Made by a program: the position numbers and the translations under genes. The notes under the pieces are model-generated. The model saw only the letters and a list, made by a program, of their open reading frames with translations, was not told the origin of the DNA and ran no database searches. A DNA stretch of 64,000 bases from Octopus bimaculoides (lineage: Eukaryota): contig NC_068994.1 of NCBI RefSeq assembly GCF_001194135.2, positions 41,855,805-41,919,804 of the forward strand, read 5' to 3'. Position 1 is the stretch's first letter, and every line of letters starts with the position of its first letter. Shown one piece after another: positions 8,667-8,740 of this stretch.

Positions 8667-8740
8667 TTTACATCAGAGCTGTTGGTGGTGAGGTGCCTGG
8701 TACCTCTTCGCTGGCTCCCAATATAGGTCCTTTGGGCTTG
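8667..8740 (+). CDS. RPL12: Exon homologous to exon 2 of 60S ribosomal protein L12 (uL11); divergent, isolated
   Basis: tattttatattttcag|..|gtaagt; translates (phase 1) YIRAVGGEVPGTSSLAPNIGPLGL vs human [24 protein letters not shown]; 74 nt, phase 1 to 0, matching human RPL12 exon 2 as I recall it. Confidence 0.9.

Follow-up and report, generated by a model that had tools for sequence, protein, structure and literature searches.

The exon and its splice signals

At 8667-8740 on the forward strand of the window, by which we mean the whole 64-kb stretch of DNA analysed, lies a 74-nt homologue of exon 2 of RPL12/uL11, recognised as such by tblastn, Pfam, nhmmer and direct alignment. The exon is entered in phase 1 and left in phase 0: it opens with the two remaining letters of a split codon (x|TT), followed by TAC ATC AGA, and closes with GGC TTG. 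In full it reads TT TAC ATC AGA GCT GTT GGT GGT GAG GTG CCT GGT ACC TCT TCG CTG GCT CCC AAT ATA GGT CCT TTG GGC TTG. Its in-frame translation (frame 3) is (V)YIRAVGGEVPGTSSLAPNIGPLGL, where the bracketed first residue, Val, presupposes a G from the upstream exon in the split codon. Towards its end, the codons GCT CCC AAT ATA GGT fall within the loop that reads APK[IV]GPLG in uL11, and this loop is not kept intact, as the AAT at 8720-8722 specifies Asn where all other uL11 examined have Lys or Arg.

Both ends of the exon carry the signals expected of a spliced gene. Upstream, a pyrimidine-rich tract at 8644-8666 (+; 75% C/T) ends in ttttcag and thereby presents a CAG acceptor, and downstream the hexamer gtaagt at 8741-8746 (+), in the context TTG|gtaagt, presents a donor; these splice-site-like signals occupy the very positions of the acceptor and the donor of canonical RPL12. 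When scored with a crude, self-made donor matrix, the donor at 8741 ranked in the top 0.3% among the 3556 GT sites of the window, which, together with the composition of the tract, bears out what the initial annotation says of the 74-nt exon, namely that its acceptor is strong and that its donor reads gtaagt. The open frame around the exon is limited to 8645-8746, so that it extends past the exon by no more than 8 codons on the 5' side, counted from the first full codon (Tyr, 8669), and 2 codons on the 3' side, and an in-frame stop (taa, 8747-8749) follows just past the donor. A weak inverted repeat (8601-8622 / 8656-8677; 22 nt, 77% complementary), the pairing of which would span the acceptor, is probably due to chance.

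Homology to exon 2 of RPL12/uL11

How securely can so short a sequence be assigned to a gene family? In tblastn searches of the window, the exon was matched by human RPL12 at E=1.2e-6 and by invertebrate RPL12 at E=5e-10, the exon peptide being 80-86% identical to canonical RPL12 in these alignments, and a DNA profile constructed from six canonical exon 2 sequences matched 8666-8739 over its full length in nhmmer (E=6.8e-15). The Pfam model Ribosomal_L11_N (PF03946) gave E=3.7e-4 over 25 aa, a score that stays under the gathering threshold because the match comprises only 25 aa. All of these E-values apply per 64-kb window, and the better ones are still significant after multiplication by the ~4e4 windows of a genome of a few Gb. 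At the nucleotide level, the RPL12 locus L001 is 80% identical to the window exon over 86 nt that include both junctions. The alignment further places both exon ends at intron positions that are conserved in complete RPL12 genes, in identical phase, and the cag|TN TAY start as well as the G|gt end are common to the six canonical loci compared. The exon at 8667-8740 is thus a true homologue of uL11/RPL12 exon 2. A chance resemblance of an exon unrelated to RPL12, for which one could invoke the shortness of the match (25 aa) and the many windows scanned when the exon was first picked out, is refuted by the nhmmer score across the whole exon, the best tblastn score, the identity to L001 across both junctions and the exact coincidence of the exon ends with conserved intron positions.

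Related RPL12 loci

A HMMER scan of cluster representatives with 8651-8740 of the window as the query returned 65 short ORFs, drawn from a library of 50% clusters in which close relatives are concealed. Except for P0141, a low-complexity repeat protein, they all come from the N-terminus or from exon 2 of uL11 in other eukaryotes, and in many of them the frame runs on into an intron. The contigs behind nine exon 2 ORFs were fetched; L001-L008 turned out to be normal RPL12 genes, with more exons past exon 3 wherever the length of the contig permits, and the exon 2 consensus of the fetched RPL12 genes begins with V[YFC][IVC][KR]AVGGEVPATS[ST], followed by ten further residues. Since no repeats shared with the window were found in any of the 132 fetched loci, these loci do not derive from the window's organism. 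L001-L008 and L129-L132, all from metagenome and SRA assemblies, encode RPL12 with GGEVPATS for GGEVGATS, and, where exons 3 and 4 were recovered, the KKVKH segment that comes after PPRDRKK is 3 residues shorter in this same set.

Protein-level searches pointed to other taxa. A 42-aa N-terminal query retrieved 8 short fragments, none of them from outside such taxa, and the best 120 of the 6560 RPL12 matches to a full-length chimera protein were all from vertebrates or plants. A word-indexed protein search with the doubled exon peptide produced no candidate, an outcome that probably stems from the index, which is poor for short queries, and does not speak for absence.

Substitutions at conserved positions

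With human and yeast uL11 as its reference, the initial annotation had proposed that three substitutions in the exon, Gly>Pro, Ala>Gly and Lys>Asn, hit conserved positions. Residue counts from 159 uL11 segments sustain this proposal for the last of the three and not for the other two, as both sites of the Gly-Ala pair vary. The first site is G in 126 segments, P in 22 and S in 7, and the second is A in 144 and G in 11; in 125 metagenomic exons the pair reads GA, GS, PA, PG or AG, and protist uL11 shows VPGA or VPGG at the same place. Pro at the first site is, moreover, the normal residue in the complete genes L001-L008 (VPATS). Judged by these alignments, human and yeast are the wrong yardstick at the Pro site, and GGEVPA appears to be normal for one group of invertebrate RPL12 genes. 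In APK[IV]GPLG, on the other hand, the Lys site is K in 157 of the 159 segments, R in the remaining 2 and N in none, and a degenerate DNA pattern for SSLAPNIGPLG found 0 matches in the metagenome collection versus at least 120 for the Lys version. Lys>Asn is the only unprecedented substitution of the three.

Divergence from canonical exons

Compared with canonical invertebrate exon 2, the window exon shows 3-5 amino acid differences, and canonical exons of different species show 1-4 among themselves. Counted by codons, 11-18 synonymous and 3-5 non-synonymous changes separate the window exon from canonical exons, as against 10-15 synonymous and 1-4 non-synonymous changes among canonical genes of different species. 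The predominance of synonymous differences implies that the exon evolved for most of its history within a working RPL12 and under its constraint, with one or two extra amino acid changes on top. As its divergence is barely above that of a true orthologue, a relic of this kind must be young, or else the exon is still constrained. The epithet 'divergent', under which the exon had originally been described, overstates the degree of divergence, given the amino acid counts above and the mostly synonymous nature of the nucleotide differences; Lys>Asn is the one abnormal substitution.

Absence of the remaining RPL12 exons

The exon stands alone in the 64 kb. A tblastn search with human RPL12 and with reconstructions of four invertebrate RPL12 proteins, carried to E-values of 100 or 5, detected no further RPL12 in the window; the exon 1 pattern ATGCCNCCNAARTTYGAYCC had 0 matches there even when three mismatches were tolerated; and DNA profiles of exon 3 and exon 4 (nhmmer) yielded no match of note there, the best E-values being 11-16. 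The earlier characterisation of the exon as an orphan, with neither exon 1 nor exons 3-6 in the window, was thus borne out by these searches. With exons 1 and 3-6 absent, the fragment alone cannot encode a ribosomal protein. This sets it apart from the canonical RPL12/uL11 loci (L001-L008, L129-L132), which it resembles in the length and phase of exon 2, in the positions of the acceptor and the donor and in the VP motif (GGEVP). In every complete RPL12 locus fetched, exon 3 sits 0.3-1.6 kb past exon 2 and is followed by further exons; in addition, the canonical loci have Ala after the Pro, where the window exon has Gly, and they always keep the Lys.

Gaps in the assembly could in principle hide missing exons, a possibility that the initial annotation had itself raised. 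The window contains 19 runs of N that amount to 5718 bases (5.7 kb), for example 6452-6675, 10501-10739 and 12144-12763, and all 19 adjoin a simple repeat on at least one side, mostly (TA)n and also (CA)n, (TCA)n or (GGA)n-like. The gaps therefore look like unresolved simple repeats and the assembly breaks appear to be repeat-driven, which makes RPL12 exons concealed in the gaps of the window unlikely.

Repeat-rich surroundings of the exon

The window consists of AT-rich eukaryotic DNA with many microsatellites and with dispersed SINE-like repeats, which seem to resemble octopod SINEs and may point to a cephalopod source. A repeat map obtained by self-BLAST of 8100-9400 against the window revealed that the only non-repeated DNA by the exon is the segment 8533-8773 (+), which measures ~240 bp and comprises 134 bp upstream, the exon itself and 33 bp downstream. 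It is bounded on the left by a fragment of an interspersed SINE-like repeat at 8466-8532 (copies at 62578-62638, 31063-31128 and 28474-28526) and on the right, starting 34 bp past the donor, by an interspersed repeat at 8774-8909 (copies at 4929-5074, 57814-57950 and 11913-12030). Farther right, at 9080-9304, come more repeats that recur several times in the window. Two abundant SINE-like families occupy 9080-9170 and 9170-9304, each with at least 9 more copies in the window at 68-83% identity. Contamination by foreign DNA, for instance that of a parasite, was rejected, as the contig that bears the exon carries the window's own interspersed repeats. Farther along lie two long imperfect trinucleotide arrays, (CAT)n of ~92 units at 9656-9931 and (TCA)n of ~87 units at 10238-10500, which give rise to long low-complexity ORFs on both strands.

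No terminal inverted repeats or target-site duplications were found around 8533-8773, and neither poly(A) nor a target-site duplication was found in 7900-9500. A Pfam search of the ORFs from 1.8 to 27 kb brought up Tc1/mariner transposase relics only and no host-gene domain; the remaining two thirds of the window were screened for host genes by the ORF list only. Across the window as a whole, no tRNA or Rfam family was detected. Among the transposase relics, the one at 4219-4713 (+) is Tc1-like, with a DDE transposase spread over three shifted frames (motifs HRGGSVMIWG and WPPQSPDLNIIE; DDE_3 E=6.5e-5), the one at 23219-23659 (+) corresponds to a C-terminal part of Tc1/mariner type (DDE_3 E=0.009), and the one at 26676-26885 (+) is a fragment of the mariner Transposase_1 domain (E=1.8e-10). 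A 183-nt inverted repeat (40433-40615 / 40638-40820; 93% complementary, 22-nt spacer) starts with its left arm directly at the border of the gap 39676-40432. It is an assembly artefact of the fold-back type, or else it marks the two ends of a mobile element.

Origin of the exon

What kind of relic, if any, preserves a single ribosomal protein exon with its splice signals? The homology stops at both conserved intron positions, splice signals flank it and no poly(A) or target-site duplication accompanies it; it follows that the exon is not a processed pseudogene, just as had been concluded when it was first described. With processed ribosomal-protein pseudogenes it has in common its origin from a ribosomal protein gene and, probably, the lack of function, but in such pseudogenes the exons are fused, splice signals are missing and poly(A) as well as target-site duplications are usually present, none of which applies here. 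We assign a probability of roughly 0.7 to the reading that 8667-8740 is an isolated non-processed RPL12 fragment, copied at the DNA level, young or slowly decaying, and probably inert. Plausibly, it arose by duplication, at the DNA level, from a canonical gene that would reside elsewhere in the genome; the duplication itself, the neutrality of its later changes and the presence of that parent gene are inferred.

Non-processed pseudogene fragments, or orphan exon relics, offer the closest parallel. Like them, the window exon keeps its intron-exon boundaries and the flanking intron ends, is incomplete, carries a substitution at a constrained site and is embedded in repeats; unlike them, it is unusually small (~240 bp of unique DNA with one exon) and has as yet no frame-breaking lesion. 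A short genomic piece, containing exon 2 and the adjoining intron ends, may have been copied, or may have been left over from a larger duplicate, with a region rich in SINEs and microsatellites as its landing site. Drift would then have begun to introduce changes that a working gene does not tolerate, most prominently Lys>Asn in the APKIGPLG loop and perhaps Ala>Gly. The intact frame and splice signals would in this case reflect the small size and modest age of the fragment rather than a function. Were the region transcribed through, its inclusion as a cassette of 74 nt, which would shift the frame, is conceivable, but there is no sign of this.

Could the exon instead be the genuine second exon of the functional RPL12 gene of this species, situated on a mis-scaffolded contig, or separated from its companions by introns longer than 8.6 kb on the upstream and 55 kb on the downstream side, or accompanied by exons that fall into gaps? 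Several observations would sit well with this. Its splice sites and frame are intact, its divergence is mostly synonymous and inside the between-species range, Pro and Gly at the Gly-Ala pair are natural variants, and the contig that bears the exon (6676-10500) is a mere 3.8 kb long, with a gap on either side, in a gap-rich draft. Measured against a functional RPL12 gene, the exon displays the homology and the intron positions; it lacks, however, the invariant Lys and, within the 64 kb, the other exons. The Asn is found at the Lys site neither in the 159 segments nor in the metagenome collection with its at least 120 Lys versions, and, by codon logic, A-to-I RNA editing of AAU is unable to restore Lys. 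In addition, simple repeats border the gaps and exon 3 lies within 0.3-1.6 kb in all complete loci. The introns of ribosomal protein genes are usually short, which likewise counts against this reading, and we regard it as unlikely.

An improbable alternative is that a mobile element (a Pack-type DNA transposon, a Helitron-like element or a transduction event) captured the fragment, in which case it would have sister copies dispersed elsewhere. The position of the fragment directly between interspersed repeats and the Tc1/mariner relics in the window could be taken as hints in this direction, but the segment is not enclosed by terminal inverted repeats, target-site duplications or poly(A), it is present as a single copy in the window, and the repeats on either side are of the ordinary, dispersed SINE-like kind.

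The isolated fragment might also have been put to a new use. According to one version, improbable in our view, a host transcript or lncRNA has co-opted it as a cassette or poison exon, or a distant RPL12 paralogue uses it as an alternative to its own exon 2, which would give a variant uL11 N-terminal loop; the preserved strong acceptor and consensus donor, the open frame across the exon and the small number of non-synonymous changes would be compatible with such a role. A sequence of only 74 nt can, however, stay open in frame and retain its signals over long periods by chance alone, and 74 is not a multiple of three, so that inclusion would shift the frame. No host coding exon or domain was detected nearby (ORFs from 1.8 to 27 kb), and the failure of the exon peptide to match any protein in the word-indexed search counts as weak evidence in the same direction, in view of the poor performance of the index on short queries. 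Co-option, raised in the initial annotation as the alternative to decay, thus found no evidence in its favour. Very improbable is the more specific idea that the exon is expressed, be it as an alternative or paralogue-specific exon 2 with Asn for Lys in the APKIGPLG loop, yielding a lineage-specific 'specialised ribosome' variant, or as a regulated frame-shifting cassette of a host transcript.

Implications

If the exon is indeed an isolated non-processed fragment, as we favour, it carries little biological weight and adds one more non-processed gene fragment to a repeat-rich genome. It does hold a warning for annotation, as an RPL12 match at the level of a single exon, when flanked by good splice sites, could lead to a false gene model or to the annotation of a spurious 'RPL12-like' protein. 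For mollusc-like RPL12 sequences, the analysis also provides a corrected yardstick, with GGEVPA as what appears to be the normal state. An RPL12 mRNA or protein of this species that reads VPGTSSLAPNIGPLGL would, if real, overturn the fragment reading. The APKIGPLG loop of uL11 is located at the factor-binding (GTPase-associated) centre of the ribosome. Should the Asn exon be part of an RPL12 mRNA, its product would be the first uL11 without the conserved Lys in the factor-binding loop.
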